The notes below the pieces were generated by a model, which was not told the origin of the DNA, did not search any database, and saw nothing but the letters and a program-made list of their open reading frames with translations. The translations under genes and the position numbers were made by a program. Positions 1,551 to 61,699 of a stretch of 64,000 nucleotides of DNA are shown here, piece by piece. The stretch comes from Dendrobates tinctorius (taxonomy: Eukaryota), in NCBI RefSeq assembly GCF_039654945.1, contig NW_027361924.1, positions 7,502,001-7,566,000 on the forward strand. The letters are read 5' to 3'. The first letter of the stretch is position 1. Every line of letters starts with the position of its first letter.

Positions 1551-11739
<10,189 letters not shown>

Positions 11740-12066
11740 TGGAGTACCCCCCCAGCGGTGGCGTATATTTGGAGGTGTCCAGCAGCGGTGGCGGAGCGAT
11801 GTAACGTGCCTGATTTGCCTTCATGCCTTACTTGTCCCGCTCACGCCCATCGCTGTCCACCCGTCGTAGATCACCAGCCTGCACCTCCTCTCCGGGGCGC
11901 TCTGGCCTCATCTCTCTTGTCACCGGGGCCGCTCTCGTCTCCTCGCTGCCGCTCACCAATGAATCCGAGAGAGAGATCAGACATGGATTTCTTCACAGCG
12001 CGAGGACTACGCCAATATGGCCGCCAGCATACCCAGTGTTATTACGCTTTGTGGATGAAAACGCGA

Positions 12067-12494
12067 CACTAGATGGCGCCACAGATCATTATTTACAGCC
12101 CAGTGGCGTCATGACAGGCATGCTGGAAATTATATTTCCACAACAGGCGGTCACTAGCCTGCTATAGACGGTGCCCCCGTCCCCCACTATAGCTCTCTTC
12201 CTTGTACATAGCTGATGTAAATAGGTTCCAGTGTCTGTGCGGCTGCAGGACCGTCCACCTTTATGTCCGGTGGGACACGCGGGGTCTGACGGGAGGGTCG
12301 GGGTAGTGTGTCGGCTTCTCCTGTGAATGCACAGTGCAAATATTAAAGCGGTTATGCGGTTGCTTTGCGGCTGGAGCGTCCCGTTGATTCTGGAGGTGGG
12401 GTGTCCTCGGAGGAGACAGACAGTATGGCCGCACATCCCTGCCTGCTGTCGCCACTGCCCGTACACAGAACTACGGGAGGGCGCCACCTGGTGG
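12067..12494. promoter_or_regulatory. Two CTCF-like motifs in convergent orientation between the STUB1 and JMJD8 stop codons
   Basis: CACTAGATGGCGCC on + at 12067-12080; CCACCAGGTGGCGC on - at 12481-12494. Confidence 0.5.
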
Positions 12495-12581
12495 TGATGC
12501 GCAGATCCCGACCTCTGGCTGCAGCAGTGATCCCTTTAAGCAATTGATGACCAGAACCTCATTCACTTCGGGACTTTTTTT

Positions 12582-12625
12582 TTTAATTCAGTTTTACTAC
12601 AGAAGAAAATTCCGTCATCAATAAA
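12582..12625. terminator. Opposed polyadenylation signals (JMJD8 ATTAAA on -, STUB1 AATAAA on +)
   Basis: TTTAAT at 12582-12587 and AATAAA at 12620-12625. An alternative STUB1 ATTAAA lies at 12342-12347. Confidence 0.5.
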
Positions 12626-12858
12626 AATCCTTAAACTTTAAAACCTGAAAACAGAAAAATCCAAACTAAAAAAAAGTGCAGAAGGTGTCCGCTACGAGCA
12701 GCCAGCATGTCAGTCAGGGGGGCCTCAGTGCTTCCCCCGCCGGTCAGCATGGAAGGGGACTCCACTGATGATGGCGCTCGTCGCAGTCTCGCAGTTGTCA
12801 GCCTGCGCTCTGAGGTCTCTCGTTGTTGTACAGCAGAACGGTGGTGATGGGGGAGTCT

Positions 12859-12939
12859 CTACCCCAGGAACGTGGAGATGAAGACGCTGGTGTCCAGGTT
12901 CAGGGTGGCGTGCCACCAGCGATCCGGGAAGTAGAGGAC
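12859..12939 (-). CDS. JMJD8: JMJD8 coding exon 9 (stop)
   Basis: VLYFPDRWWHATLNLDTSVFISTFLG then TAG. Confidence 0.97.
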   Translation of the reverse strand, partial: VLYFPDRWWHATLNLDTSVFISTFLG

Positions 12940-15900: not shown

Positions 15901-18900
15901 CACTGCAGCCCCCTCCTCTAATGTACCCCAGTCCTGTACACTGCGGCCCCCTCCTCTATTATACCCGGTCCTGTACGCTGCGGCCCTCTCCTCTATTATA
16001 CCCGGTCCTGTACGCTGCGGCCCTCTCCTCTATTATACCCGGTCCTGTACGCTGCAGCCCTCTCCTGTTATACCCCGTCCTGTACACTGCAGCCCCCTCC
16101 TCTAATGTACCCCAGTCCTGTACACTGCGGCCCCCTCCTCTATTATACCCCGTCCTGTACGCTGCGACCCTCTCCTCTATTATACCCCGTCCTGTATGCT
16201 GCGGCCCTCTCCTCTATTATACCCGGTCCTGTACGCTGCAGCCCTCTCCTGTTATACCCCGTCCTGTACACTGCAGCCCCCTCCTCTAATGTACCCCAGT
16301 CCTGTACACTGCGGCCCCCTCCTCTATTATACCCCGTCCTGTACGCTGCGACCCTCTCCTCTATTATACCCGGTCCTGTACGCTGCGGCCCTCTCCTCTA
16401 TTATACCCGGTCCTGTACGCTGCAGCCCTCTCCTGTTATACCCCGTCCTGTACACTGCAGCCCCCTCCTCTAATGTACCCCAGTCCTGTACGCTGCGGCC
16501 CTCTCCACTATTATACCCCATCCTGTACGCTGCGGCCCTCTCCTCTATTATACCCGGTCCTGTACGCTGCGGCCCTCTCCTCTATTATACCCGGTCCTGT
16601 ACGCTGCGGCCCTCTCCTCTATTATACCCCCGGTCCTGTACGCTGCAGCCCTCTCCTCTATTATACCCCATCCTGTACGCTGCAGCCCCCTCCTCTATTA
16701 TACCCCGTCCTGTATGCTGCGGCCCCCTCCTCTATCATACCCTGGTCCTGTACGCTGCGGCCCCCTCCTCTATTATACCCTGGTCCTGTACCCTGCGGCC
16801 CCCTTCTCTATTATACCTGGTCCTGTACCCTGCGGCCCCCTTCTCTATTATACCTGGTCCTGTAAGCTGCAGCCCTCTCCTCTATTATACCCCGGTCCTC
16901 TACACTGCAGCCTCCTCTATTATACCCCGGTCCTGTACCCTGCGGTCCCCTCCTCTATTATGCCCCAGTCTGTATGCTGCGGCCCCCTCCTCTATTATAC
17001 CCCGATCCTGTACCCTGCGATCCCCTCCTCCATTATACCCTGGTCCTGTATTGTGTGGTCCCCTCCTCCCCCTTATATTATAATGTTACTGGTCTCACCT
17101 GTGATTAGTATCTCACCTTTCTCGTAGGAATACGTGTTTGCGGTGCTCAGTCGGACGCTGCGATCTCCATACGTCCGGAGCAGTTGCTCTTTCCTGCACA
17201 GTGACCGGAACTCCTGACATAAACGACAACATGTGAGATCCGCACAACAAGAGTCCTGTGTGGGAGGGACAGGAACCAAAGACACACTCACCGAATTGTC
17301 TGTGATTCCCTCGATAATGAGCGGCCTCTTGTATGCATACCTGTCAAGAAGAAGATCAGGGGGCTCAGTGCGTGTGCTGCGGGGAGCAGCGGGCTCGGGC
17401 ATGTGCAACGGGCGTGCAGCAGGAGCTCAGTACATGTGCTGCGGGGGGGGGGAGCACGGGGGCTCGGGGCATGTGCTGCGGGGGAGCAGGGGGCTCGGTC
17501 CATGTGCTGCATGGGAGCAGGGGGCTCGGTCCATGTGCTGTGGAGGTGCAGGGGCCTCGGGGGACATGTGCTGCGGGGGGGGGGGGGGGGAGAAGGCTCG
17601 GGGGACATGTGCTGCGGGGGGGGGGGGGGGGGGAGAAGGCTCGGGGGCATGTGCTGCGGGGGGCTCAGTCCATGTGCTGTGGAGGTGCAGGGGGCTTGGT
17701 GCACGTTGTGGGGGTGCCGGTGGCTCTTTACACATGCAACAGAGGTGATGGAGACATAGCGGGGAGCACACCTGTGATCACTCACCGCTCAATGAATTCT
17801 GAGTAGGTGATAGAGGCGTCTCTCCTCTCCACCGTGCAGCGCTCCTCCTCTTGGACCGGGGAGTAATTGTTCCTTTGCCTGGAGACAAAAATAAGAGGAC
17901 GTCATGTTTCCTGCAGAAGCCCGGACCTGAAGGTGGAGCATGCACTCTGCTGCCCCATAGATAAGGAATGGCGCGTCGGTGGAGCGTGCACACTGCTGCC
18001 CCATAGATAAGGAATGGCGCGTCGGTGGAGCGTGCACACTGCTGCCTCATGGATAAGGAATGGCGCGTCGGTGGAGCGTGCACACTGCTGCCCCATAGAT
18101 AAGGAATGGCGCGTCGGAGCGTGCACACTGCTGCCCCATAGATAAGGAATGGCGCGTCGGAGCGTGCACACTGCTGCCCCATAGATAAGGAATGGCGCGT
18201 CGGTGGAGCGTGCACACTGCTGCCCCATAGATAAGGAATGGCGCGTCGGTGGAGCGTGCACACTGCTGCCCCATAGATAAGGAATGGCGCGTCGGTGGAG
18301 CGTGCACACTGCTGCCCCATAGATAAGGAATGGCGCGTCGGTGGAGCGTGCACACTGCTGCCCCATAGATAAGGAATGGCGCGTCGGTGGAGCGTGCACA
18401 CTGCTGCCCCATAGATAAGGAATGGCGCGTCAGTGGAGCGTGCACACTGCTGCCCCATAGATAAGGAATGGAGCGTCGAAGCGTGCACACTGCTGCCCCA
18501 TAGATAAGGAATGGAGCGTCGGAGCGTGCACACTGCTGCCCCATAGATAGGGAATGACGCGTCGGTGGAGCGTGCACACTGCTGCCCCATAGATAAGGAA
18601 TGGCGCGTCGGTGGAGCGTGCACACTAGGGTGACCGGATCTCATATGGGGGGGAAAAAATGTTGGAATCTTGTCCGTCTGGACCCCACAAAACGATTCCC
18701 CTTTCCAGATATTGAGAGAGCCAAAATTTGAGCTCGATCAAACGACGTTAACCCGTGCCGCTCGTCGCTCAAAGTTTGAAAAAATCCAAATTGAGGTATT
18801 TTAAGATTTAGGTATTTTGCATAGTCTGTTAGACTATAAAGAATGTGACAACAACATTGCAGAAATAGCCCTGACCAAATTTTCGAACCATTTGTGGTAT

Positions 18901-20359
18901 TTGAATGCAGAGTTGGTGGGATTATCGTTTTTTGATCCCACCATTACAGACAATGAAAAGTTGTTAATGGCTAATAAATTGCTCAGTAGCACAGATGAAC
19001 CATCAGAGCACGCTAACCTACATGAGTTGATAATTTTACATAGTTATCTAATCTATTCTAGAGCTTTTGTTAAAGTAGTTTTTGAAACGTCAGAATATAA
19101 TGCTCGGCATTTGCTTACAACTTGCAGGACATATTGCTTTTGTTCTTCATCTTTTGTCAGAAGGTCGTTAAAGTCGGCTACTTCCTACCTCTTTTAATTT
19201 TTCTTTCCTAACTTTTGGCTTTACAACCCTAGCGTGCTCTGATGGTTCATCTGTGCTACTGAGCAATTTATTAGCCATTAACAACTTTTCATTGTCTGTA
19301 ATGGTGGGATCAAAAAACGATAATCCCACCAACTCTGCATTCAAATACCAAAAATGGTTCGAAAATTTGGTCAGGGCTATTTCTGCAATGTTGTTGTCAC
19401 ATTCTTTATAGTCTAACAGACTATGCAAAATACCTAAATCTTAAAAAACCTCAATTTGGATTTTTTCAAACTTTGAGCGACGAGCGGCACGGGTTAACGT
19501 CATTTGATCGCGCTCAAATTTTGGCTATCTCAATATCTGGAAAGGGGAATCATTTTGTGGGGTCCAGACGGACAAAATTCCAACATCGATTTTTTGCGGT
19601 CACCCTAGTGCACACTGCTGCCCCATAGATAAGGAATGGCGCGTCGGTGGAGCGTGCACACTGCTGCCCCATAGATAAGGAATGGCGCGTCGGTGGAGCG
19701 TGCACACTGCTGCCCCATAGATAAGGAATGGCGCGTCGGTGGAGCGTGCACACTGCTGCCCCATAGATAAGGAATGGCGCGTCGGTGGAGCGTGCACACT
19801 GCTGCCCCATAGATAAGGAATGGCGCGTCGGTGGAGCGTGCACACTGCTGCCCCATAGATAAGGAATGGCGCGTCGGTGGAGCGTGCACACTGCTGCCCC
19901 GTTTTGCCAATCACTGCGGTTCCCGGCGGTCAGACCACCACAGATCTATAACTGTCACCTATCCTCTGGATTAGTGACAGCCACTTTGTGTGACACATTA
20001 GACTCTGGTCTGGTCCTTCCACAGTCCGGGAGCGGGCTCCAGCCGACCCTTCTGTTATTTGTCCAGGCCACAATTCGATGCCGGATTCATGGAGCATTGG
20101 ATGTCTGCTGCTGGCGAATGTGCTTTATTAATTCTCCACAGATGTTGGGATGCTGGGAGTTGTAGTTGAACAGCTTTTCCAGGCTGTGTATGTACAGTGA
20201 GGCGATGACATCATAGATCGTGATGACATCAGTCACGCTGTCGGCCATGACTAGGACCCACCATCCGCCGCTGTCACACGCTGTGTAGTCGCTCCGCTCC
20301 TCCGGTGACAGCGCTACGATGACTTGGAGCAGGAGGTAAAGGAGGGCGAGAGAAGCCAT
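12859..20359 (-). CDS. JMJD8: JmjC domain-containing protein 8, 9 coding exons, 269 aa, with N-terminal signal peptide
   Basis: Exons 20359-20262, 17878-17786, 17340-17292, 17213-17117, 15427-15359, 15260-15141, 14996-14929, 14852-14718, 12939-12859. All GT-AG with consistent phases (810 nt). Peptides VRLSTANTYSY, TLYFFGDNNFTEW, GVPFHWHGPGYSEVIYGRKRWFLYPP, VLYFPDRWWHATLNLDTSVFISTFLG. Tail-to-tail with STUB1 as in mammals. Confidence 0.97.
13110..14420. repeat. 38-bp minisatellite, ~34 copies, in the last JMJD8 intron; degenerate tail to ~14660
   Basis: Unit GACCCCACCATACTGCCGTCATCCCGCTCGCTCTCTAT. Confidence 0.95.
14718..14852 (-). CDS. JMJD8: JMJD8 coding exon 8
   Basis: RWFLYPPDKTPEFNPNRTTLSWILETYPLLPAAERPIECTIRPGE. 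Confidence 0.97.
14929..14996 (-). CDS. JMJD8: JMJD8 coding exon 7
   Basis: GSGTGVPFHWHGPGYSEVIYGRK. Confidence 0.97.
15141..15260 (-). CDS. JMJD8: JMJD8 coding exon 6
   Basis: DTLYFFGDNNFTEWGSLFQKYSPPPFTLPGTTGAYSFGIA. Confidence 0.97.
15359..15427 (-). CDS. JMJD8: JMJD8 coding exon 5
   Basis: VDVPFQDYVSHLLGPQDLDSLGV. Confidence 0.94.
15510..17070. repeat. ~37-bp minisatellite, ~42 copies, in a JMJD8 intron
   Basis: Unit CTATTATACCCGGTCCTGTACGCTGCGGCCCTCTCCT. Confidence 0.95.
17117..17213 (-). CDS. JMJD8: JMJD8 coding exon 4
   Basis: EFRSLCRKEQLLRTYGDRSVRLSTANTYSYEK. Confidence 0.96.
17292..17340 (-). CDS. JMJD8: JMJD8 coding exon 3
   Basis: YAYKRPLIIEGITDNS. Confidence 0.95.
17360..17720. 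repeat. Degenerate G-rich tandem repeat in a JMJD8 intron
   Basis: Recurring CATGTGCTGCGGGG...GGCTCGGGG with poly-G runs. Confidence 0.8.
17786..17878 (-). CDS. JMJD8: JMJD8 coding exon 2
   Basis: QRNNYSPVQEEERCTVERRDASITYSEFIE. Confidence 0.93.
17932..19900. repeat. 46-bp minisatellite split by a hAT insertion
   Basis: Unit GGTGGAGCGTGCACACTGCTGCCCCATAGATAAGGAATGGCGCGTC at 17932-18625 and 19608-19900. Confidence 0.95.
18626..19607. mobile_element. Non-autonomous fold-back hAT (hATm-like) DNA transposon
   Basis: Termini TAGGGTGACCG...CGGTCACCCTA and a perfect 8-bp TSD GTGCACAC. Inverted arms of ~390 bp each encode a transposase fragment (KFSNH(L/F)WYLNAELVGLSFFD). The spacer encodes the C-terminus LTKDEEQKQYVLQVV on the - strand. 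Confidence 0.88.
20262..20359 (-). CDS. JMJD8: JMJD8 coding exon 1
   Basis: MASLALLYLLLQVIVALSPEERSDYTACDSGG; GTGGGT donor. A polypyrimidine-CAG acceptor at 20409-20410 implies an upstream non-coding exon. Confidence 0.85.
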
Positions 20360-20464
20360 GTGGCCCTGGGGCCCCGCAGCACAGACGGCTTCACCTCTAA
20401 GCCCAGACCTGCAGCGGAAGGAGGAGAGGGACAGATACAACGGGGTATAAGCTCCAGTGCGTAA

Positions 20465-21060
20465 TACACATTCTATACAGAGCGCCAATATCACGATATA
20501 CATTCTATACAGAGCGCCAATATCACGATATACATTCTATACAGAGCGCCAATATCACGATATACATTCTATACAGAGCGCCAATATCACGATATACATT
20601 ATATACAGTATAGAGCGCCAATATCACGATATACATTCTATACAGAGCGCCAATATCACGATATACATTATATACAGTATAGAGCGCCAATATCACGATA
20701 TACATTCTATACAGAGCGCCAATATCACGATATACATTATATACAGTATAGAGCGCCAATATCACGATATACATTATATACAGAGCGCCAATATCACGAT
20801 ATACATTATATACAGAGCACCAATATCACGATATACATTATATACAGAGCGCCAATATCACGATATACATTATATACAGTATAGAGCGCCAATATCACGA
20901 TATACATTATATACAGAGCGCTAATATCACGATATACATTATATACAGAGCGCCAATATCACGATATACATTATATACAGTATAGAGCGCCAATATCACG
21001 ATATACATTATACAGAACGCCAATATCGTGAAATATATTGAGTGCCAATATCGCGATATA
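20465..21060. repeat. 32/39-bp minisatellite
   Basis: Unit ATACATTCTATACAGAGCGCCAATATCACGAT, with or without an extra 7 nt. Confidence 0.93.
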
Positions 21061-46827: not shown

Positions 46828-47044
46828 TTACAGTCGACACCTAATACACTGCTGTAAAGCTGGCAGCGCTGTTCAAGCACCATGTATTTCCTTCAGGAAA
46901 TGCCCAGCTAGTTATTATTAGGATTAATTATGGTATTTTTATCTTCAACCTGGATTATGATTTATTTACTCAGGATCTTGTTTTTTTAACAACTTTGCAT
47001 AATTGTAAAGTCTGAAATATCTTTTCCACCCCAAGCAATTATAC

Positions 47045-47751
47045 AGATCCTGAGTTACAGCCAATATTATACTCCAGAGCTGCACTCACTATTCTGCTGG
47101 TGCAGTCACTGTGTACATACATTACATTACTGATCCTGAGTTACATCCTGTATTATACTCCAGAGCTGCACTCACTATTCTGCTGGTGCAGTCACTGTGT
47201 ACACACATTACATTACTGATCCTGAGTTACATCCTGTATTATACTCCAGAGCTGCACTCACTATTCTGCTGGTGCAGTCACTGTCTACATACATTACATT
47301 ATTGATCCTGAGTTACATCCTGTATTATACTCCAGAGCTGCGCTCACTATTCTGCTGGTGCAGTCACTGTCTACATACATTACATTATTGATCCTGAGTT
47401 ACATCCTGTATTATACTCCAGAGCTGCACTCACTATTCTGCTGGTGCAGTCACTGTGTACATTACATTACTGATCCTGAGTTACATCCTGTATTATACCC
47501 CAGAGCTGCACTCACTATTCTGCTGGTGCACTCACTGTGTACATACATTACATTACTGATCCTGAGTTACATCCTGTATTATACTCCAGAGCTGCACTCA
47601 CTATTCTGCTGGTGCAGTCACTGTGTACATACATTACATTACTGATCCTGAGTTACCTCCTGTATTATACTCCAGAGCTGCACTCACTATTCTGCTGGTG
47701 CAGTCACTGTGTACATACATTACATTACTGATCCTGAGTTACCTCCTGTAT
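47045..47751. repeat. 86-bp satellite, left part
   Basis: Unit CCAGAGCTGCACTCACTATTCTGCTGGTGCAGTCACTGTGTACATACATTACATTACTGATCCTGAGTTACATCCTGTATTATACT. Confidence 0.97.
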
Positions 47752-48159
47752 CTCTTTTATTATAAAATATCAAAAACAATACAACACAACATTCCAGAAA
47801 AGAAAACACATAAACCAAAATACACATATTAATCATACACTTAGGACATACAGACGCTTGTGCAAAACCGCAACTTGTTATAGTCCCCAAGCTTTCCAGC
47901 TTAGGGGACCCCCAGCAGGAACTTTCCAACAGAAAACTTTTCCCATAAAATAATGAAAAACAGTTTTTAATCTTTCACTCCCCATTCACACTTCCACCCA
48001 TACCTATATACAGGAAAATAAAAATAATATTCTTGGCCCATGCTGCCTTAAATAAACCTAGCCAATTCTTTTTTGGCAAAATTACCTACACCAGCTAAAC
48101 ACCTCAATATACACACATATACACATATATACACACATACATATATATATATATATATA

Positions 48160-49380
48160 CACTCACTGGCCACTTTATTAGGTACACCATGCTAGTAAGG
48201 GGTTGGACCCCCTTTTGCCTTCAGAACTGCCTCAATTCTTCGTGGCAGAGATTCAACAAGGTGCTGGAAGCATTCCTCAGAGATTTTGGACCATATTGAC
48301 ATGATGGCATCACACAGTTGGCGCAGATTTGTCGGCTGCACATCCCTGATGCGAATCTCCCGTTCCACCACATCCCAAAGATGCTCTATTGGATTGAGAT
48401 CTGGTGACTGAGGAGGCCATTTGAGTACAGTAAACTCATTGTCATGTTCAAGAAACCAATCTGAGATGATTCGAGCTTTATGACATGGCGCATTATCCTG
48501 CTGAAAGTAGCCATCAGATGTTGGGTACATTGTGGTCATAAAGGGATGGACATGGTCAGCAACAATACTCAGGTAGGCTGTGGCGTTGCAACGATGCTCA
48601 ATTGGTACCAAGGGGCCCAAAGAGTGCCCAGAAAAAATTCCCCACACCATGACACCACCACCACCAGCCTGAACCGTTGATACAAGGCAGGATGGATCCA
48701 TGCTTTCATGTTGTTTACGCCAAATTCTGACCCTACCATCCGAATGTCGCAGCAGAAATCGAGACTCATCAGACCAGGCAACGTTTTTCCAATCTTCTAC
48801 TGTCCAATTTCGATGAGCTTGTGCAAATTGTAGCCTCAGTTTCCTGTTCTTAGCTGAGAGGAGTGGTACCCAGTGTGGTCTTCTGCTGCTGTAGCCCATC
48901 TGCCTCAAAGTTCGACGCACTGTGCGTTCAGAGATGCTCTTCTGCCTACCTTGGTTGTAACGGGTGGCAATTTGAGTCACTGTTGCCTTTCTATCAGCTC
49001 GAACCAGTCTGCCCATTCTCCTCTGACCTCTGGCATCAACATGGCATTTCCGGCCACAGAACTGTCGCTCACTGGATTTTTTTTCTTTTTCGGACCATTC
49101 TCTGTAAACCCTAGAGATGGTTGTGCGTGAAAATCCCAGTAGATCAGCAGTTTCTGAAATTCTCAGACCAGCCCTTCTGGCACCAACAATCATGCCACGT
49201 TCAAAGGCACTCAAATCACCTTTCTTCCCCATACTGATGCTCGGTTTGAACTGCAGGAGATTGTCTTGACCATGTCTACATGCCTAAATGCACTGAGTTG
49301 CCGCCATGTGATTGGCTGATTAGAAATTAAGTCTTAACACACAGTTGGACAGGTGTACCTAATAAAGTGGCCAGTGAGTG
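48160..49380 (-). mobile_element. Intact Tc1/mariner DD36E (Incomer-type) transposon, 1221 bp
   Basis: Perfect 29-bp TIRs CACTCACTGGCCACTTTATTAGGTACACC and TA flanks. Confidence 0.95.
48192..49232 (-). CDS. Tc1 transposase, 346 aa, DD36E
   Basis: WSDESRF...QQDNAPCH...SPDLNPIE, with 36 residues between the second D and the E; uninterrupted ORF. Confidence 0.93.
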
Positions 49381-49388
49381 TATATATA

Positions 49389-50994
49389 CAGTGGGGAAAA
49401 AAAGTATTTAGTCAGTCAGCAATAGTGCAAGTTCCACCACTTAAAAAGATGTGAGGCGTCTGTAATTTACGTCATAGGTAGACCTCAACTATGGGAGACA
49501 AACTGAGAAAAAAAAATCCAGAAAATCACATTGTCTGTTTTTTTTTCATTTTATTTGCATATTATGGTGGAAAATAAGTATTTGGTCAGAAACAAGCAAT
49601 CAAGATTTCTGGCTCTCACAGACCTGTAACTTCTTCTTTAAGAGTCTCCTCTTTCCTCCACTCATTACCTGTAGTAATGGCACCTGTTTAAACTTGATAT
49701 CAGTATAAAAAGACACCTGTGCACACCCTCAAACAGTCTGACTCCAAACTCCACTATGGTGAAGACCAAAGAGCTGTCAAAGGACACCAGAAACAAAATT
49801 GTAGCCCTGCACCAGGCTGGGAAGACTGAATCTGCAATAGCCAACCAGCTTGGAGTGAAGAAATCAACTGTGGGAGCAATAATTAGAAAATGGAAGACAT
49901 ACAAGACCACTGATAATCTCCCTCGATCTGGTGCTCCACGCAAAATCCCACCCCGTGGGGTCAGAATGATCACAAGAACGGTGAGCAAAAATCCCAGAAC
50001 CACGCGGGGGGTCCTAGTGAATGAACTGCAGAGAGCTGGGACCAATGTAACAAGGCCTACCATAAGTAACACACTACGCCACCATGGACTCATCCTGCAG
50101 TGCCAGATGTGTCCCACTGCTTAAGCCTGTACATGTCCGGGCCCGTCTGAAGTTTGCTAGAGAGCATTTGGATGATCCAGAGGAGTTTTGGGAGAATGTC
50201 CTATGGTCTGATGAAGCCAAACTGGAACTGTTTGGTAGAAACACAACTTGTCGTGTTTGGAGGAAAAAGAATACTGAGTTGCATCCATCAAACACCATAC
50301 CTACTGTAAAGCATGGTGGTGGAAACATCATGCTTTGGGGTTGTTTCTCTGCAAAGGGGCCAGGACGACTGATCCGGGTACATGAAAGAATGAATGGGGC
50401 CATGTATCGTGAGATTTTGAGTGCAAACCTCCTTCCATCAGCAAGGGCATTGAAGATGAAACGTGGCTGGGTCTTTCAACATGACAATGATCCAAAGCAC
50501 ACCGCCAGGGCAACGAAGGAGTGGCTTCGTAAGAAGCATTTCAAGGTCCTGGAGTGGCCTAGCCAGTCTCCAGATATCAACCCTATAGAAAACCTTTGGA
50601 GGGAGTTGAAAGTCCGTGTTGCCAAGCGAAAAGCCAAAAACATCACTGCTCTAGAGGAGATCTGCATGGAGGAATGGGCCAACATACCAACAACAGTGTG
50701 TGGCAACCTTGTGAAGACTTACAGAAAACGTTTGACCTCTGTCATTGCCAACAAAGGATATATCACAAAGTATTGAGATGAAATTTTGTTTCTGACCAAA
50801 TACTTATTTTCCACCATAATATGCAAATAAAATGAAAAAAAAAAACAGACAATGTGATTTTCTGGATTTTTTTTTCTCAGTTTGTCTCCCATAGTTGAGG
50901 TCTACCTATGATGTAAATTACAGACGCCTCTCATCTTTTTAAGTGGTGGAACTTGCACTATTGCTGACTGGCTAAATACTTTTTTTCCCCACTG
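49389..50994 (+). mobile_element. Tc1 DD34E transposon with ~200-bp TIRs (Tzf/ZB-like), 1606 bp
   Basis: TIRs start CAGTGGGGAAAAAAAGTATTTAG; TA flanks. Confidence 0.95.
49756..50776 (+). pseudogene. Tc1 DD34E transposase with one frameshift at ~50092
   Basis: MVKTKELSKD...HGL / [10 protein letters not shown]...WSDEAK...QHDNDPKH...SPDINPIE...GYITKY, split over two frames. Confidence 0.9.
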
Positions 50995-51812
50995 TATATA
51001 TACATACACATTTTTTTTTTTTTTTTTTATTATTTTTCCCACCACCCACACCACAGGCCCATAAATGTCCATGGCCTTATCACGTCTAGGCCTGATGAGC
51101 ACGAAAGTTTATGCCCACAAGCAAAACCCTCACCCATTTGCCCCCGATGTGCTCAAAAATGGTCCATTTTCCATAATTTCCATGGTCCATGGTATATGTT
51201 ATATCCAGTCGCCACTTTCCCCTTGTTTTAGGGTCCTTTTACTTTTTTTTTCCGCTCTCACCCCCCCATTCACCCCCCTCCCAACCTCACTACGCCCCCC
51301 ATGCACCTCTGACTACGGAAAAGAATAAAAACACATACTACAATACATATACTACAATACATATTACAATACAATATTACAATGCAATGTCATTACATCA
51401 TTTGCTTTACCGAATATTACCACACCACAAACCTTTACTTACAGGCCCAAGTTCAGTGCCTGCAAGCCCAATATCCATTATTTCTCTATCTCAAAACAAA
51501 AATCTAGATGTGCCATGCAGTAGCCCACCACCAGGAAAAAGGAGTTCTAGAGGCCCCATCCCTCACTAACACATTCACCCTGTCCCTCAACAACTAAGAC
51601 TGTCCCTACTTCTGTCCCTAAAGAAACTGTCCCTATCTGTCCTTACCTGCCCCTACTCTACCTACCTTATCATAACTAACTCTCTATCTGTCCCTCAGTG
51701 CCTGTCCCTTCCTGTCCCTATCTGCCCCTACTTCTGTCCCTCACCACCCACACCACCTTATGCTGTCCCTACCCACATTCACACAAAATCTAGCTCTCCC
51801 TAGAGTGCGTTT

Positions 51813-54800
51813 TTAAAAGGAAAGGCCCCTCCAAAGCCAAGAGGCCCTCCTCACACCCAACCTTTCGAACTCCAAAGAACGCACCTTCACCAGGTCACCC
51901 AGGATGTTACTAACCACCTCTTCCCTTGGGAGGGCTTTCTGCCGCGTCGAAACTAAGCACCGTGCATTCCAAATGTAGAACCTAACCACTACACTGACTA
52001 GGAATAAAGTGCCCCGGTCTCGGCCACCCAGAGTTCTGAACGCTCCATAGGCCCACTCGGCATAGGAGAGGGACGCCAGCCGCGGCCAACGTATGGAAGC
52101 CCCCACCCTGTTGTAAACCTCTGTATTAAAGGGACACTGAAGCAGGAAGTGCTCCATGCTTTTCAGCACGTCGCCACACTCCTCACGGGGACAACCCCGA
52201 TCATCGGATTTCCTGCACTTCAGGTTATCCTTTACATACAGCCTCCCGTGGAAGCAGCGCCAGGTCAAGTCCCAAAACTTCGTGGGGATCCGCTTAGAAT
52301 TTAAAAGCCCGAGCCCCACCTCCAGATCCCAGCCTGGGCAATCCTTAAGGGCCAGGGGCTTCTGGAAATGGGCCAACAGAACCCTCCTGTCAAGGCATTG
52401 CCGCGACATGGTCCTGATTTCCCACATTCCCAGACCCCACCGGCGGATCACCTTCAGAACCGGGGTAGCATAAGCCGGGAGATGCCCATGAGGTGTGCGG
52501 AGGTCCTTCACTTGCCCTCCTGTCTCCCATTCCTGGAAGAAGGGCCGAAGCCAACCCTTGCAGGATACTACCCACGGAGGAGCCCTCTCTAGCCAGAGGT
52601 TGGAAATGTTGGCTTTAAGAAAGGTGTTCACTAAGAACACTACCGGGTTGACCATACCCAACCCACCTAGTCTCCTTGTGCGGTATGTGACCTCTCTCTT
52701 GATTAGGTTGAGCCTATTCCCCCATAATAGCTGGAAGAACAGGCTATAGACCCGTGTCCAGAGAGGTTCTGGCAAGATGCACACGCTGCCAAGGTAAATT
52801 AACAAGGGAAGCAGAAAGCCTTTAGCCAGGGCAACCCTTTCCCTTAGGGACAAAGACCAACCCTTCCATTGGTCCACCTTTTGGGCGGCGATCTTAAGTC
52901 TGCCCTCCCAATTTTGCTGGGGGTAGTCCCCAGGGCCAAATTCGATGCCTAGAATTTTGGCGGTGGCCTGGGGCCCTAGAAGGGTGTCCGGGAGATCAAA
53001 ACTAGGATCTCCCCCTCCCAGCCAGAGACTTTCACACTTATCCCGGTTGATCATGGACCCGGATGCCTCAGAGTAGCGTACTACCTCTGACATGACCCAA
53101 TCCGCCTCCCCCCTCGAGGACACGAAAAGGGAAACATCATCGGCGTACGCCACCACCCTCAGAGAGGACCCAGAGCCCGCCTGGTCCATCCCGACTCCCG
53201 CCAACGGTCCACGATCTACCCTCCTTAGGAAGGGATCGATTGCGAACACGTATAAAAGCGGGCTCAGCGGACAGCCCTGACGGACCCCAGAACCCACCTC
53301 AAAAGGGCGACCTGACCAACCGTTCACCAGCGGAAAAGTCTCAGCCCCTTGGTACAAGATCTCTAACCATTTTACAAACCTCCCAGGCAGACCATACCTC
53401 AAAAGGACGGACCAGAGGTACTCATGGTTGACCCGGTCAAAGGCTTTCACTTGGTCTAACGACAGCAAGTACCCCTTCCAGTGGCCTGCCCTACCCTGCT
53501 CCACTGCCTCCCGGACACCGAGCACAGCACTAAAAGTACTGCGGCCTGGAACAGAGCAATGCTGGGCCCCTGAAAGGAGCCGGGGTGCAAACTTCACCAG
53601 CCGATTAAACAGCACTTTGGCCAGAACCTTCCGGTCCGTATCGAGAAGCGCTATGGGACGCCAATTCTCGATACGGGACGGATCTTTACCCTTTGACAGA
53701 ATAATTAGGGCTGACTTCCTCATTGAGTCGGGAAGAGTGCCCGAGGATAGACACTCATTAAAGACCCCTGTCAAGAGGGGGACCAAGGAGTCCCTAAAAG
53801 TCTTATAAAACTCGGATGTTAAGCCATCCGGACCTGGCGATTTCTTGGGCCGAAGCCCATCAATGGCCAGTCTCACTTCCTCCTCCCTAATTTCTTCTGC
53901 CAAAACACCAAGAGAGGGATCACCCCCTGGCTCAGGGATGGTTTCAGCCAGGAAAGCCGACATCCTATCCCGATCCAGATCCTTCTTTTCCAAGAGGCGC
54001 GAGTAGAAGGATCTGACCACCTCCAGGATCCCTGATTTGGATCTGTTCAGGGACCCCGTACTGTCGATCAGTCCTGTCACCATCTTACAATTCACTGACA
54101 TCTTACAGTTTCTGTAAGGGTCGGGCGAGCGGTACTTCCCGAAGTCCCTCTCAAAAACTAAAGATGTGTGTCTATCATACTGGCACCTCTTGAGCAAAGA
54201 TTTCACTCTGGAGATTTCCTCACGGTCACCTCCAGTCGAGACAAGCTGCTCGAGTTTCCTCCCCAGAGCCTGATACAAGCGGTGCCTGTTCAGACTTCTG
54301 AGGTTCGAGAGCTGACGGAAGAACCCCGCCACCCGCTTTTTGAAGATCTCCCACCACTCTGACTTACTACTACAGAGATCCAACAGCGGTACCTGGCTCT
54401 GAAGAAAATCCTCGAAGGATTGTCTCACCTCCGCTTCTTCCAGCAGGGACGAATTGAGCTTCCACAGCCCTCTTCCCATCCGAGGAGTCTCTGCAACATT
54501 CAGAGAAAAGAAAATTAAACAGTGGTCGGAGAACTCCACCTCAACGGCGGACACAGCAGAAAAGATGGCGTCCTCCTTCAAAAAAAACCTGTCTATTCTA
54601 GACCTACTGCTACCCCTATGGTAGGTGAAACCCCCGTGGCCTGGGGTGTGCCGGATGTGGACATCCACCAGGCGAGCTTCACTAGCTATGCTATTAAGCG
54701 CGACGCTGTCATAAGCCAGGCGGTCTCCGGGACCCCCCCGGTCACGGGACCTTGTAACGGTGTTGAAGTCCCCACCGAAGACCACCTGTCGGCTCGTAAA

Positions 54801-55205
54801 AAGAAAGGGCTTGATCCTCAGGAAGAGACATTTACGGTCCCACTTGGACTGTGGGCCGTAGATATTAATGAGCCGGAGCTCTTGTCCCCTCATGAAGACA
54901 TCTAGGATCAGGCACCTCCCCATTTCCAACTCAGTAACCCGTCGGCATTCAACATCTGCAGTCTTAAAAAGGACTGCCACCCCGCTATACGGCTCAGTCG
55001 CAAGAGACCAGTATGAGTGCTCGCACCTCCACTCCCTCCGTGCTTTAAAGATGGCCCCCATGTCCATTAGTCTGGTCTCTTGCAAAAATAACATTTCTGC
55101 CTCAATCCGGGAGAGAAAATCAAAGGCCGTGAAGCGAGCCGCATCTGACTTAATGCTGGCGACATTAATGGATGCCAGCGTCAACGGGGCGAGTTCAGCC
55201 ATCAT
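51813..55205 (-). CDS. Tx1-type ORF2: APE endonuclease + reverse transcriptase + C-terminal Zn motif, 1130 aa
   Basis: LQET, GGDFN, SRIDRF, FSDH; KSPGPDGL, WRPIALL, GVRQGCPLSP, AYADD; CPREEC...EHFLLQC. Confidence 0.93.
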   Translation of the reverse strand: MMAELAPLTLASINVASIKSDAARFTAFDFLSRIEAEMLFLQETRLMDMGAIFKARREWRCEHSYWSLATEPYSGVAVLFKTADVECRRVTELEMGRCLILDVFMRGQELRLINIYGPQSKWDRKCLFLRIKPFLFTSRQVVFGGDFNTVTRSRDRGGPGDRLAYDSVALNSIASEARLVDVHIRHTPGHGGFTYHRGSSRSRIDRFFLKEDAIFSAVSAVEVEFSDHCLIFFSLNVAETPRMGRGLWKLNSSLLEEAEVRQSFEDFLQSQVPLLDLCSSKSEWWEIFKKRVAGFFRQLSNLRSLNRHRLYQALGRKLEQLVSTGGDREEISRVKSLLKRCQYDRHTSLVFERDFGKYRSPDPYRNCKMSVNCKMVTGLIDSTGSLNRSKSGILEVVRSFYSRLLEKKDLDRDRMSAFLAETIPEPGGDPSLGVLAEEIREEEVRLAIDGLRPKKSPGPDGLTSEFYKTFRDSLVPLLTGVFNECLSSGTLPDSMRKSALIILSKGKDPSRIENWRPIALLDTDRKVLAKVLFNRLVKFAPRLLSGAQHCSVPGRSTFSAVLGVREAVEQGRAGHWKGYLLSLDQVKAFDRVNHEYLWSVLLRYGLPGRFVKWLEILYQGAETFPLVNGWSGRPFEVGSGVRQGCPLSPLLYVFAIDPFLRRVDRGPLAGVGMDQAGSGSSLRVVAYADDVSLFVSSRGEADWVMSEVVRYSEASGSMINRDKCESLWLGGGDPSFDLPDTLLGPQATAKILGIEFGPGDYPQQNWEGRLKIAAQKVDQWKGWSLSLRERVALAKGFLLPLLIYLGSVCILPEPLWTRVYSLFFQLLWGNRLNLIKREVTYRTRRLGGLGMVNPVVFLVNTFLKANISNLWLERAPPWVVSCKGWLRPFFQEWETGGQVKDLRTPHGHLPAYATPVLKVIRRWGLGMWEIRTMSRQCLDRRVLLAHFQKPLALKDCPGWDLEVGLGLLNSKRIPTKFWDLTWRCFHGRLYVKDNLKCRKSDDRGCPREECGDVLKSMEHFLLQCPFNTEVYNRVGASIRWPRLASLSYAEWAYGAFRTLGGRDRGTLFLVSVVVRFYIWNARCLVSTRQKALPREEVVSNILGDLVKVRSLEFERLGVRRASWLWRGLSF

Positions 55206-58200
55206 GGGTGATCGAGTTGGATGGCCAGTTTCTTCCCTGCCCCGCTATCACCTCCTCCTGGGGAGGGGTCAGACACCTTCCTTTTTAGGGAAGCCCCCGA
55301 CGTGTCCATCCCTTCCCCCCAGTGTCCTCGCCCCCGGGTTCCAGGCCTGTCCCCCCCTCAGGAGGAACAGTGCCCCCTGAGGGACGGACTCCACCATCCC
55401 CTGAAGGACCCTCCGGTGTTACCCACGGCCCAGCACCCTCGTCTTGCGGATCATCATCTGAACCTCCGAGGGCGCTTAACCGGTTGGAGAGTCTGATCAG
55501 AGGGGGGTCAGCGGGCCCTTCCGTATGCACTCTTGTGGTCGGGGGCGGGGGGGACTTTGAAGACTTGTCAGCCCTCTTCCCTCCCGATTTAAGGTTGGCA
55601 CGCTTGTTTTTGCCACCTGATGCTGTAGGCTGCCCCCTGACATCCTCGTCGACACTTTCATAATGAGAGGAGTCGTCTGAGTCAGCCGCTTTCTCCTCTC
55701 TCTCCATCCTCCTGATCTCCTCACTCACTGCACTCTCTCCCAGGGCCTCAGAGGCTTTTGCCACGGGCCTAGAGGGAGGGGCAGGCATCACCCCAGTTTC
55801 CCGAGGCTCCACTGCCCCTTGCCTCCATGGCGTTTTTCTTGCCTCCGCTCATACGCGGGGCCCCTTGCCTTAGCATTGCCCTTCCTCACCACCCCCTCAG
55901 CCCTTCCCCCTCCACCACCACCTGCCACGGCAGAAGCACCGCCAGAGGTTACCCCCTCACGGTTTCCCCCCACCGGGCCTGCAGCAGTATTGGAGAAAGA
56001 GCGAGGGCAGCGGCTGAGCGGGTGACCTAGGTCACCACACAGGTGGCACCAAATGTCTTTGCACAAGGCGGCCAGGTGGCCTACCCCACCACACAACGCA
56101 CACTTCTGCACCTTGCAGCTGGCGCTGAAGTGGGTGGGGTCGCCGCACTTGTGGCAGACCTTCGGTTGCCCCTGGTAGAAGACCAGGATCCTGTCCCTCC
56201 CCAAGAACGCCGAGGAAGGGATGTGGGTGACCGTGCCGCTGGAAACCTTCAGCTTTACCATGAAGGTCCAGCCCCCCGACCAGATGCCAAATTCATCCCT
56301 GTTCTTTTTTGGGACCTCGGTGACTTCCCCGTAACGAGAAAGCCACGTCATTATGTCCACGCCTGCGAGCGACTCGTTACAAGTCACCACGGTCACTCGC
56401 TTGACGGCATTTTGGCGAGACACCGCTTGCGCAACGAAGTCTCGCCATCCGGGCTCTTCTCGCACCAGCTCGTAGTTCGACCAGAAGAGCTCAAGCCCCT
56501 CTGGCCGCACGAAACTGACATCAAAGAAGCGGGACGCCGAAGGATGTATCAGGGCAAAGATGTCATTCGCCCCGAAGCCCATCTTTAGGAGGAGCTCCAC
56601 CACCTTGCTCCTGGGTGGACAAGCTTCATTGCCCCCCCACCTAAGACAGACCACATTCCTTCTTGGCGGCCCCTGCCCAGCTGTGGGGAGAGACCAAACA
56701 GTCCCTCCCTCCCTTTGATTTTGGAAGGCAGCAAGGCCGTGTCTCTCTATCCAGAAAGACAGGTCCACTGTCCTCCCCTCTACTGTTACCGACCTTTCTC
56801 CCCTTTTAAGGGCTTCCAGGAAACGGTGGTGCAAAGCGCTGTCCCTGGAGCCCGGAGGCGAGGAGACCCCCCCAGGACCACCCTGACCCCCAGTCGTGGC
56901 CCCCGCATAGTTACGTTGGGGTCTCACGGCCGGGGGGGGCAGATGGGCCAGCCCTCCTACCACCACTTGTGCCTGCACCCTCATTCGTCCTCCCACTCAC
57001 TCTCCCATTCACTCTATTATTCCCGCTCACCCCAGAATTCACTCCAGCACTTTCAGCCACATTCACTCCCTCATCCATGTCACTCACATCCCCATTCACG
57101 TCCACAAACAACTCCTCAAAAATATCAGTCATCCCGCTCTCACATTCACTCACGCACTCCTCATACTCCTCAGCACCAATTTTATTTATATTTACATTTT
57201 TATTTACATCAGCATTAACAGTTCCTTTGCTGCAATTTTCCCTCCCACCTGCTGGGGGCCCTAGCTGGCCAGGTGCTCCATGATTGCCCTTACTGGCCAA
57301 GAGTGCTGCTGCCCCTTTAAGTGCCTCAGCGCTGATAGCATACTGCACATTTCCCTGGCTGTGCCTGGGAGCAGCTCTTGGTTTCTCCAGCACCATTTTT
57401 TTTTCTTTTTCAGAGTTTCTTTTGTTTTCCTTGCTCTGGGCAGGGACGGCCTCTGGCACAGCTCCCTGCCCTGCATCCTTCTTCACTCCCTCTGCCGGCT
57501 TGCCAGGGGGCGCCAGAGTCCCCGCACCCTCAGATGAAGGTAGGTGGGCTGGGGACCCCGACAACCCCCCGCCAGCTTTTGGGGGCAGCTTGCTTGCACT
57601 GCTTGGGAGGGTGGGTGGGACAGAGGGCAGCGGGCCTGCCGTGGCCACGCCCCCCCGCCAGTCACAGCCACCACAGGCAGAGCAGTGACCCCTTGCGAGG
57701 CCACGCCCCCCCAGGTGACGCGGACGTAGCGAGCGGGACAGCGGCCAAGGAGGACACGCCCCCCCGCATGCCACAGCCTTTGCAGGCCGGGCAACACTTG
57801 GGGAGGCCCCGCCCCCCTCGCAGACCACCGCCGCCACTCTGTGCCCACCACTTGCCACGGGCAGGGCCGGCCACTCCCCCTCGTCGCCCAGTGGCGGCGG
57901 AGCCCCCCGCACGGACCCCCTTTTGGGTCGACGTGCCGGAGACCCCGTTCTTACCACGGGCGCCGCCATGGGAGCGACCAGCTCCCTGCACCGCTTCAGT
58001 TGTTGTTTGATTTTTTGCTCACCCTTCCTAGACTTCTGGACCCCCACTAGCGATCCAGACTTAGCGGATCCGTACGTGGGGGGCCCAGAAGCCCCAGCAC
58101 TCACCGCCGGAGGTGCGGCCCTGGCTGTACCAACTTTACCTGGTGCCAGGCCAGCCCCCCTGCCACTGAGGGCTGAGCCTGGACACCACCACCAACACCA

Positions 58201-59210
58201 CAACCAGCACCGACCTCCATGTCGCTGCCCTGGTCTGAACTGTCACCAGATGCGACAGTCAGGTCACAACAGTCATCTCTCTCCCCGCTCCCTCGCTGCG
58301 GACCCACCACAGGGCCCGAGCCGGGGTGGGTAGGGGGTTCCACACAGCGGGACAGAGGGGCCCCGGGAAGAGGAGCAAAAACCAGTTGTTCCTCCACGCC
58401 TTCAGAGGCCTTACGCCTGCGCCTCCTGTTTCTCCTCTTCCCGGTTGCCTCATCCTCCGGGCAGACTTCATCCCCAAACAACAGCGTGCCAAACCGTGCT
58501 GGGGATTCCATCTGCTGCACTTGCCTGAGGATGAGGCAGCCCCCCTCGGTATTACTCCCACTCCCTCCATCCTCCCCCTCGCTCCTGCTTTCCTCCGCGT
58601 TACTGAAGTCCAGCGGGAGGGCCAATTGCTCAGGGGCTATCCCGCTGCATGTTACCTGGCTCACGCTGGTGTCCGCCAGGTCTTCAGGTGGAGGTGGCCC
58701 GGGTGTAGCGTGGGCGCCATCTTGCTCTTCCTTCTCACTTTCCTCCACCTGGGTGGGGCCTCCTGACCCCCCAGGAGACCCACCGGCCATGGCCCTGAAC
58801 CGGTCCTCGTTCCGCAGCTTCTGGAAGGGGCCGCTGCCAGCCATGATGACACTTCGCCGGCCCTCCAGGGCCCGAATCTCCTCTTCCAGCCGCTGGACTG
58901 TGGCAGCGACCTCCGCTTTCTTTGAGGTACGGAGCCTGTTTTTAGATATTATCCTGGCTCCCTCCAACTCCCCCCGAAGTCTCCTCAGCTGCTTCCCGGC
59001 CTCCTCATATTCGGAGAGGTGGGCATGGATGCGGGAGGCGTAGGTGGTAGCCAACTCTCCCACAGCCTTGGAGCCCCAGATGTTAAGTGGGGGCCCCGCC
59101 TCTCCTCTGCCGGCTGCTGCACCTCCGGGGGAAGGGCCCGCCACAGCCTTCACTTCAGGGGTCCCGGACCCTGGAGCCTTGCGGCCCCCTGGTGTCCGCT
59201 TTTTCCCCAT
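55206..59210 (-). pseudogene. Tx1 ORF1 region (coiled coil, low-complexity linker, 3 CCHC knuckles; ZCCHC3-like core) broken by frameshifts
   Basis: Overlapping ORFs 58101-59210, 56911-58203, 55788-56996 and 55285-55812 in alternating frames. Knuckles CHKCGDPTHFSASC, CALCGGVGHLAALC, CHLCGDLGHPLSRC. Confidence 0.75.
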
Positions 59211-59459
59211 CCCTGGGACTGGCTGGCTGTGCCTTGGGCCTCCTGGTGGTGGATGAGGCCCCCCACCCCCAGTTGGCTTGCCGGGGGGTGGGAGCCAGGG
59301 GCACAGCCCCGGCGCTCAGTCCCAGGTAGAGTCCTCTTTCCTGGGAAGGGGGCAGATGGAAAGTCCTTGCAGGAAAAAAAAAACCTCCCTTCCCAGGAGC
59401 TTAGCAAAATCCCAGCCTGCAGACGCTCAGCTGCGACGCTCCTCCTCTTCCTGGGCGTG

Positions 59460-61297
59460 TCCAGAGCTGCACTCACTGTTCTGCTGGTGCAATCACTGTG
59501 CACATACATTACATTACTGATCCTGAGTAACATCCTGCATTATACCCCAGAGCTGCCCTCACTATTCTGCTGGTGCAATCACTGTGTACATACATTACAT
59601 TACTGATCCTGAGTAACATCCTGCATTATACCCCAGAGCTGCACTCACTATTCTGCTGGTGCAGTCACTGTGTACACACATTACATTACTGATCCTGAGT
59701 TACCTCCTGTATTATACTCCAGAGCTGCACTCACTATTCTGCTGGTGCAGTCACTGTGTACATACATTACATTACTGATCCTGAGTTACATCCTGTATTA
59801 TACCCCAGAGCTGCACTCACTATTCTGCTGGTGCAGTCACTGTGTACATACATTACATTACTGATCCTGAGTTACCTCCTGTATTATACCCCAGAGCTGC
59901 ACTCACTATTCTGTTGGTGCAGTCACTGTGTACATACATTACATTACTGATCCTGAGTTACCTCCTGTATTATACCCCAGAGCTGCACTCACTATTCTGC
60001 TGGTGCAGTCACTGTGTACATACATTACATTACTGATCCTGAGTTACCTCCTGTATTATACTCCAGAGCTGCACTCACTATTCTGCTGGTGCAGTCACTG
60101 TGTACATACATTACATTACTGATCCTTAGTTACATCCTGTATTATACCCCAGAGCTGCACTCGCTATTCTGCTGGTGCAGTCACTGTGTACATACATTAC
60201 ATTACTGATCCTGAGTTACCTCCTGTATTATACCCCAGAGCTGCACTCACTATTCTGTTGGTGCAGTCACTGTGTACATACATTACATTACTGATCCTTA
60301 GTTACATCCTGTATTATACCCCAGAGCTGCACTCACTATTCTGTTGGTGCAGTCACTGTGTACATACATTACATTACTGATCCTGAGTTACCTCCTGTAT
60401 TATACTCCAGAGCTGCACTCACTATTCTGCTGGTGCAGTCACTGTGTACATACATTACATTACTGATCCTGAGTTACCTCCTGTATTATACTCCAGAGCT
60501 GCACTCACTATTCTGCTGGTGCAGTCACTGTGTACATACATTACATTACTGATCCTTAGTTACATCCTGTATTATACCCCAGAGCTGCACTCGCTATTCT
60601 GCTGGTGCTGTCATTGTGTACATGGATTACATTACTGATCCTGAGTTACATCCTGTATTATACGCCAGAGCTGCACTCACTACTCTGCTGGTGCAGTCAC
60701 TGTGTGTATACATTAGATTACTAATCCTGAGTTACCTCCTGTATTATACCCCAGAGCTGCACTCACTATTCTGCTGGTGCAGTCACTGTGTACATACATT
60801 ACTGATCCTGAGTTACCTCCTGTATTATACTCCAGAGCTGCACTCACTATTCTGCTGGTGCAGTCACTGTGTACATACATTACATTACTGATCCTGAGTT
60901 ACATCCTGTATTTTACTCCAGAGCTGCACTCACTATTCTGCTGGTGCAGTCACTGTGTACATTACATTACTGATCCTGAGTTACATCCTGTATTATACTC
61001 CAGAGCTGCACTCACTATTCTGCTGGTGCAGTCACTGTGTACATACATTACATTACTGATCCTGAGTTACATCCTGTATTTTACTCCAGGGCTGCACTCA
61101 CTATTCTGCTGGTGCAGTCACTGTGTACATACATTACATTACTGATCCTGAGTTACATCCTGTATTATACCCCAGAGCTGCACTCACTATTCTGCTGGTG
61201 CAGTCACTGTGTACATACATTACATTACTGATCCTGAGTTACATCCTGTATTATACTCCAGAGCTGCACTCACTATTCTGCTGGTGGAGTCACTGTG
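59460..61297. repeat. 86-bp satellite, right part, ~21 copies
   Basis: Same unit and orientation as 47045-47751. Confidence 0.97.
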
Positions 61298-61699
61298 TAA
61301 AAAGTGTGAATTTCTGGGTTGCATGCCTTTAAGTTTCTCCTCATAACTCAGGCCAGAACCAAGATAGGGAAATGGAAAAAACACCATTCCAATCAAAACA
61401 GTACAGGCTTTCATCCGATATGTGACAAGAATATCTTTGATAATATTTTACCCATACGGACTCAAACGCCAAATTTTGAAAAGCATTTCCAAAAAACCTA
61501 CCCTTTTTTGGACTATAAGAGGAGGAAAACAGAAAAAAATGAAGGAAAAAATGTGGTCATGACACACTGTTCTGGGGAAGGGGGATCTGCTGCTGACAGT
61601 GTTGTAGGGGTAATGTCCCCAATTCTGTACTAATACTCTCAATCCAGGTATATGAGGCCCCCCAACCATGTGTACATGGCCTCTAATCTAAGTGTCTCG

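Follow-up and report, generated by a model that had tools for sequence, protein, structure and literature searches.

Targets recorded for families of the Tx1 clade of non-LTR retrotransposons by Kojima 2015 (PMC4494074) include Tx1D (the target of Tx1L), U2 small nuclear RNA (snRNA) genes (Keno), microsatellites (Kibi and Koshi) and a crocodilian mariner element, and the legend of the tree in Fig 3 of that work marks satellites ('Sat') among the family targets. Its passages on target choice, citing Christensen 2000 and Takahashi and Fujiwara 2002, credit mainly the endonuclease, both for Tx1L and for other elements of the apurinic/apyrimidinic endonuclease (APE) type. We analyzed a stretch of 64,000 nucleotides from the poison frog Dendrobates tinctorius (assembly GCF_039654945.1, contig NW_027361924.1, positions 7,502,001 to 7,566,000 of the forward strand; hereafter the window), in which a long interspersed nuclear element (LINE) interrupts an array of an 86-bp satellite. 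On the evidence below, this LINE very probably belongs to a lineage of L1/Tx1-type non-LTR retrotransposons whose insertions occur at a single fixed site in the 86-bp satellite of dendrobatoid frogs. In the open-access literature, we found no paper describing the element or the 86-bp satellite in poison frogs; satellite-targeting Tx1 families are already catalogued, and the finding is unsurprising to transposon specialists.

Tandem Repeats Finder (TRF) detected one 86-bp repeat family on both sides of the insertion (47042-47751 and 59461-61299), in two parts:

47042-47751, minus strand: left part of the satellite, the 3' (downstream) flank in the orientation of the element (TRF: 8.3 units, 96% matches)
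59460-61299, minus strand: right part of the satellite, the 5' (upstream) flank, in register with 47042-47751 minus 5 nt (TRF: 21.5 units, 95%)

On the plus strand, the array halts at ...CCTCCTGTAT (47751) and restarts at TCCAGAGCTG (59460). In comparison to the unit ...CCTGTAT TATAC TCCAGAG..., the TATAC alone (5 nt) was lost at insertion, and neither a target duplication nor a terminal poly(A) was found at the insertion ends. Since the halves remain in register minus these 5 nt, they represent one array split by an insertion of 11,708 bp, which lies in minus-strand orientation and terminates on that strand with ...TATAATAAAAGAG. TRF and the junction sequence thus confirmed what a preliminary description of the window had reported: an array split nearly in register, with TATAC missing and with neither duplication nor poly(A). 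For a MITE-borne satellite of the Xstir or T2-MITE type, which it had mentioned, we obtained no support, as the array flanks in the window had no terminal inverted repeats and no flank in common with the arrays of the other frog loci described below (L019-L024). In contigs of the window species, the k-mer depth of the satellite was ~4000x that of the LINE, which indicates that the satellite is independent of the element. Long 86-bp arrays without any LINE were present in L019 (4861-5526) and L021 (2233-6800). In L019, an unrelated 763-bp insertion (5538-6299) breaks the satellite at another phase, after ...CAGTGACTG; thus, other elements enter the array at other positions.

Loci of other species were retrieved solely by protein homology to pieces of the first open reading frame (ORF1) of the element, and therefore their flanks constitute an unbiased sample. 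Five of the fetched loci carried a related LINE in the satellite of the window: L019 and L021 from two chromosomes of Ranitomeya variabilis, L022 from R. imitator, and L023 and L024 from Anomaloglossus baeobatrachus (Aromobatidae), where the satellite unit reaches 97 bp via an 11-bp internal insert. All six satellite-borne copies (the window included; four species, two frog families) had an identical orientation relative to the satellite, and their 3' junctions fell at one site within 1 nt. In L019 and L021-L024 the junction reads ...ATAATAAAAGA followed by G or T, then A, G or C followed by TACAGGAT. The window has ...ATAATAAAAGAG/ATACAGGA, to which L019 and L022 add one or two A, and L021, L023 and L024 have ...ATAATAAAAGAT, then C or G, then TACAGGAT.

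The 5' junctions were variable. Counting unit positions from the base that directly follows the 3' junction, the last base of the upstream flank is position 81 in the window, a loss of 5 nt; it is position 79 in L021 and L023 (7 nt lost) and approximately position 60 in L019 (26 nt lost). The flank of L022 continues beyond the nick by 3-8 nt, so that a short stretch is duplicated, and L024 is 5'-truncated at element position 1670. The exact 3' junction combined with variable 5' junctions indicates independent events of target-primed reverse transcription (TPRT), i.e. the copies are independent insertions. None of the seven dendrobatoid copies sits in unique DNA: six occupy the 86/97-bp satellite, and the seventh, L020 of R. 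variabilis, a 40-bp minisatellite. Kojima 2015 regarded an element as target-specific when one sequence type made up more than 20% of its flanks; in our small sample it made up those of six of the seven copies. The preliminary description, which had proposed a satellite-targeting lineage, had named unrelated flanks or random phases as refuting observations, and in this examination the copies from four species and two families came out in favour of the proposal. The contigs L001-L003 of close ORF2 relatives stop ~350 nt past the stop codon, short of any junction, and a search of metagenome contigs of the Joint Genome Institute (JGI) with the 20-nt 3' tail as a query returned 15 matches of 20-30 nt, all of them due to chance.

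The contigs of the window's own species agreed with this picture. We mapped contigs of four D. tinctorius runs onto 47580-53579, and in three of them (X2, X1 and X11, from three studies) a contig extended from 47738 or 47744 through the 47751/47752 junction to 48104. The depth of these contigs (352.7 in X2, 69.7 in X1 and 30.2 in X11) matched that of contigs inside the 3' untranslated region (UTR) and ORF2 (346-419 in X2). Compared with the window copy, they have 20 additional nucleotides after 47970 and differ at 3-6 bases, and therefore they represent other copies, i.e. the family majority, and not the window locus. As a de Bruijn contig continues for 8-14 nt into the satellite at the full depth of the family, there is no major branch at the element end. 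Relative to the majority of the three runs, the window copy lacks 20 nt at 47970, a near-duplicate of the adjacent TCTTTCAC... motif, and differs at 47827, 47855 and 48019.

In the nucleotide tree of ORF2, the satellite-borne copies formed two supported clades, ~0.29 substitutions per site apart: clade A (support 100/99), which unites the window, L019 and L022 and has L020 as its sister, and clade B, composed of L021, L023 and L024 (support 100/100). The ratio of nonsynonymous to synonymous substitution rates (dN/dS) between the open ORF2s of the window, L023, L001 and L002 was 0.156-0.178. ORF2 is thus under purifying selection between lineages, which diverged as working elements and not as dead duplicates. 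Since clade B is common to Dendrobatidae and Aromobatidae, the association with the 86-bp satellite probably predates the split of these two families. In L023 (8371-15981) both long reading frames are open (1143 and 1146 codons), and this copy is 97% identical to the 5'-truncated L024 copy; the family looks recently active in A. baeobatrachus. The ORF1 protein cluster (P0099) has 24 members, and the nearest named homologues were unnamed reverse transcriptase proteins from frogs, among them Xenopus tropicalis (58% identity).

After subtraction of two nested Tc1-like elements, the window LINE is ~8.88 kb long, in agreement with the ~8.9 kb and the uninterrupted 1130-aa ORF2 with APE and reverse transcriptase domains given in the preliminary description; the Pfam domains confirmed the latter (Exo_endo_phos 5.7e-12, RVT_1 3.6e-31, zf-RVT 5.3e-06). 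Its parts are as follows:

47752-47775, minus strand: conserved 3' tail of the LINE, ...TTTTATAATAAAAGAG, which includes AATAAA (alignment of copies)
47776-48104, minus strand: terminal segment of the 3'UTR, fast-evolving (contigs 47738-48104 at family depth)
48105-48159, minus strand: (TA/CA)n microsatellite of the 3'UTR
48160-49380, minus strand: nested Tc1-like DNA transposon 1, flanked by TA; its 346-aa transposase ORF (48192-49232) is open
49389-50994, plus strand: nested Tc1-like DNA transposon 2; its terminal inverted repeats are ~200 bp long and its transposase ORF (50084-50776) is partial
50995-51812, minus strand: proximal 3'UTR with GGGACAG-type repeats, motifs kept in L001/L002
51813-55205, minus strand: open ORF2 of 1130 aa with an APE endonuclease (aa 12-228), a reverse transcriptase (aa 512-755) and a zf-RVT domain (aa 970-1030)
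55348-59210, minus strand: ORF1 region, frame-shifted, matching the L019 1295-aa ORF1 in frames 1, 3, 1, 3
59162-58281, minus strand: coiled-coil-like N-terminal part of ORF1
56936-55812, minus strand: two ZCCHC3-type RNA-binding domains and CCHC knuckles of ORF1
55827-55348, minus strand: tail of ORF1
59211-59459, minus strand: start of the 5'UTR, aligning with the L019 and L022 5' ends from CAGGAAGAGG on

The window 5' end aligns with those of L019 and L022, apart from ~6 extra nucleotides at the start (CACGCC), which indicates a full-length copy. The succession of frames 1, 3, 1, 3 against L019 corresponds to ~3 frameshifts in ORF1, and the window element is thus full-length yet no longer autonomous, with ORF2 open and ORF1 frame-shifted. 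In L019, ORF1 is a continuous frame of 1295 aa: its N-terminal part is coiled-coil-like, and after a long linker of low complexity come the RNA-binding domains, the knuckles and the tail. Among the Pfam matches of ORF1 we found RBD_ZCCHC3_1st, RBD_ZCCHC3_2nd and zf-CCHC, and Transposase_22 was absent. An ORF1 with an RNA recognition motif (RRM) and a CCHC zinc knuckle, and not of the Transposase_22 type, fits the type given to Tx1 by Ivancevic et al. 2016 (PMC5203782); as far as the architecture of ORF1 and ORF2 can indicate, the element is consistent with membership of the Tx1 clade.

The tail at 47752-47775 is the sole portion of the last 350 nt that is kept among subfamilies, and AATAAA lies 5-10 nt before the element end in every copy aligned, L020 included. 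In the clade-A relatives, the 3'UTR measures 1.07-1.12 kb and closes with the tail of the window. On the minus strand, the window 3'UTR contains an internal A-run (51011-51037), and this run, together with the microsatellite, both preceding the last 353 nt (47752-48104), suggested that the latter might be a separate element. We rejected this, because the satellite is in register only if 47752-59459 is one insertion, because the depth of the segment equals that of the LINE in three runs, and because L019 and L022 share the layout of an A-rich tract, ~300 nt and the same tail. The window contains no further copy of this LINE.

Two different Tc1-like transposons thus sit side by side within one (TA/CA)n microsatellite of the 3'UTR. 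The read depth of both reached 1e5 to 7e5 in run X2, ~1000x that of the LINE, indicating extremely abundant families. Outside the insertion, the region 1-47000 of the window is crowded with unrelated minisatellite arrays, with units of 18, 25, 32, 37, 38, 39, 41, 45, 46, 49, 51, 71 and 81 bp; many exceed 1 kb, and much of this region consists of tandem repeats.

Rfam gave no match at gathering score in the window and, for 47000-61400, no ribozyme even when hits with E up to 1 were admitted. A self-cleaving ribozyme at the 5' junction as in R2, whether of the hepatitis delta virus (HDV)-like or the hammerhead type, was accordingly not detected. At 51092-51107, on the plus strand and antisense to the LINE, CTGATGAGCACGAAAG looks like the core of a hammerhead that lacks helix II; as Rfam returned no ribozyme here, we took this CTGATGAG...CGAAAG motif as a chance resemblance. 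A related motif, CACGAAAGTTTGTGGCC, occurs in ~2.9 copies of a 32-nt unit in the 3'UTRs of L019 (17790-17882) and L022 (31796-31883).

We propose that the element is inserted by TPRT. The ORF2 endonuclease would nick the plus strand of the window within the short palindrome GTAT-T-ATAC, at CCTGTA(T)^T; a nick in the centre of this palindrome is expected because the first-strand primer must, in the standard TPRT model, be the plus-strand 3' end ...CCTGTA(T). From the freed 3' OH, complementary DNA (cDNA) would then be primed on the conserved tail of the RNA, ...UUUUAUAAUAAAAGAG. The other strand would be broken a few bases off and the 5' end joined imprecisely, at the cost of 5 nt in the window and, elsewhere, with 7- or 26-nt deletions or a 3-8-nt duplication. 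Relative to the phase of the 3' junction, every 5' junction falls between about -26 and +8 nt, which argues that breakage really takes place there instead of at arbitrary positions of the unit. The AAUAAA located 5-10 nt from the element end may lead to cleavage and polyadenylation of the transcript inside the flanking satellite, so that the RNA would carry a short target stretch able to pair with the nicked DNA. Such read-through pairing would account for the precision of the 3' junction as well as for DNA copies that lack poly(A). After insertion, the two Tc1 elements would have entered the microsatellite of the 3'UTR and ORF1 would have gained its frameshifts.

The sister copy L020, the ORF2 of which is ~85% identical to that of the window and the 3' tail of which is as in the window, lies between 40-bp arrays at 7424-7633 and 20491-20792, with a unit that starts CACCACTAGGGGGAGCTCAC. 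Its 3'UTR (within the copy at 7424-20792) is enlarged by ~4 kb, with 391-bp repeats and TTAGGG-like repeats (16811-17014). We compared the equivalent of the beta-hairpin loop of the L1 endonuclease, which was exchanged in the chimeras whose structures are 2v0r and 2v0s: in L020 it is FTFHRGNCRSRID, essentially as in clade B, which targets the 86-bp unit. Substitutions specific to L020 amount to 6.5% of the APE domain versus 6.8% for those specific to the window, and thus, in this comparison, neither a distinctive loop nor an excess of change marks the switch of target. The comparison neither proves nor excludes a switch based on the endonuclease. More distant relatives were observed in Hyla sarda (77-80% ORF2 identity), where the element adjoins a 47-bp minisatellite on its 5' side, and in Bufo bufo (~74% ORF2 identity), where no obvious flanking array was seen (L025:4535-14228 and L026:10557-15517 for these two species jointly). 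Among hyloid frogs, dwelling in minisatellites may be a broader habit that involves different repeats.

Several points weigh against a lineage with one fixed site in the 86-bp satellite. The proposed nick position is a deduction from the junctions and the TPRT model. The seven dendrobatoid copies are all that we have, and the fetched loci all come from outside the window's own genome, while the contigs of the same species enter the satellite for only 8-14 nt, which is under the 31-nt bridging rule of the tool. L020 occupies another minisatellite, one of 40-bp units, where it is likewise in register, and hence the specificity is not immutable within the clade. Its endonuclease, being unmarked by any distinctive change, appears to weaken a purely endonuclease-based account, and that the endonuclease is the sole setter of specificity does not follow from the proteins compared. 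In addition, the frameshifts of the window ORF1 could partly be assembly errors.

The most serious alternative, which we consider possible but rather unlikely, is that homing is mainly RNA-directed: the satellite read-through would pair with the nicked satellite, an endonuclease of loose specificity would suffice, and a stray insertion would re-target the lineage. The presence of AATAAA near the end of all copies, L020 too, would agree with this, as would the location of L020 in register in its 40-bp minisatellite with an unchanged tail, a loop equal to that of clade B and no lineage-specific excess of APE change. On the other hand, the 5' junctions, all within about -26 to +8 nt, place real breaks at the site, the literature passages cited above (PMC4494074) credit the endonuclease mainly for Tx1L and other site-specific LINEs of the APE type, and L020 is a single decayed copy. 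Under this alternative the transcript would carry the address of the lineage, as the RNA would end in the parent copy's own repeat and guide priming there, an idea that we likewise regard as possible but rather unlikely. If it were true, a single accidental insertion into a minisatellite not used before, as with L020, would found a lineage with a new target while the endonuclease stayed unchanged, i.e. the family would be self-reprogramming.

Repeated insertion at the fixed satellite site was also weighed against one ancient insertion amplified together with the satellite, by segmental or array amplification and with no repeated targeting. Satellites do amplify and homogenise, and the 3' junction is common to all copies; however, the copies vary at their 5' junctions, with one of them 5'-truncated, they are spread over different chromosomes and four species, the array flanks are not common to them, and ORF2 shows purifying selection (dN/dS 0.16-0.18). 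This very improbable explanation is already largely refuted. Equally hard to credit is a non-specific L1-like element found in an abundant AT-rich satellite by chance. The genome is packed with minisatellites, the satellite has ~4000x the abundance of the LINE, and the site is a TA-rich stretch, but chance would have to place six of six satellite-borne copies at one base (within 1 nt) in one orientation, the seventh (L020) in register in another repeat and none in unique DNA, with contigs unbranched at the junction. Finally, that the 86-bp array is part of the element, as terminal repeats made by the LINE, is the least credible and is already contradicted: tandem repeats do occur in UTRs of some LINEs and every copy adjoins a repeat, but the flanks are in register across the insertion, the satellite depth is ~4000x that of the LINE, and L019 and L021 hold long LINE-free arrays.

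A lineage dedicated to one satellite site is notable in that a single satellite address was kept long-term across two frog families, and in that a closely related copy (L020) has a different address with no visible change of the endonuclease. The relatives in the 86-bp and 40-bp repeats thus form a compact natural system for the question of whether protein, RNA or both set the address of an APE-type LINE, and site-specific LINEs are natural cases of RNA-templated insertion at a chosen DNA address. In the very large, repeat-rich genomes of poison frogs, part of the LINE load would be channelled into satellites, a safe harbour for both host and element.

Among the described systems, Tx1L of Xenopus laevis, which resides in the Tx1D piggyBac-type transposon, is alike in being a frog LINE with APE and reverse transcriptase domains and a CCHC-type ORF1, in using one fixed site in a repeated sequence and in needing no poly(A) tail. 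It differs in that the target of the window element is a free-standing 86-bp satellite without a carrier transposon; the window lineage is also set apart, by description, by its very long ORF1, of ~1300 aa in L019, the N-terminal part of which is coiled-coil-like. Homing to multicopy repeats is shared with Keno (U2 snRNA genes), Kibi ((TC)n), Koshi ((TTC)n), the crocodilian Tx1-Mar and the 'Sat' families, whereas the window lineage has its hosts in Dendrobatidae and Aromobatidae, uses a different satellite, and comprises two clades on one site with a sister copy in another minisatellite. The insect LINEs of ribosomal DNA and telomere repeats (R1, R2, SART1/TRAS1) resemble it in their exact 3' junctions, in small target deletions or duplications, and in that a co-transcribed target sequence is proposed to help priming; however, they belong to other clades, R2 has a restriction-like endonuclease, and in the window element no HDV-like or other ribozyme was detected. 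The closest solved structure is human LINE-1 ORF2p (9k6g, 8uw3; E about 4e-67), with the same APE and reverse transcriptase architecture over residues 7-853. In contrast to the window lineage, human L1 has a loose target of the TTTT/AA type, produces target duplications, carries a poly(A) tail and has an ORF1 of the Transposase_22 type.

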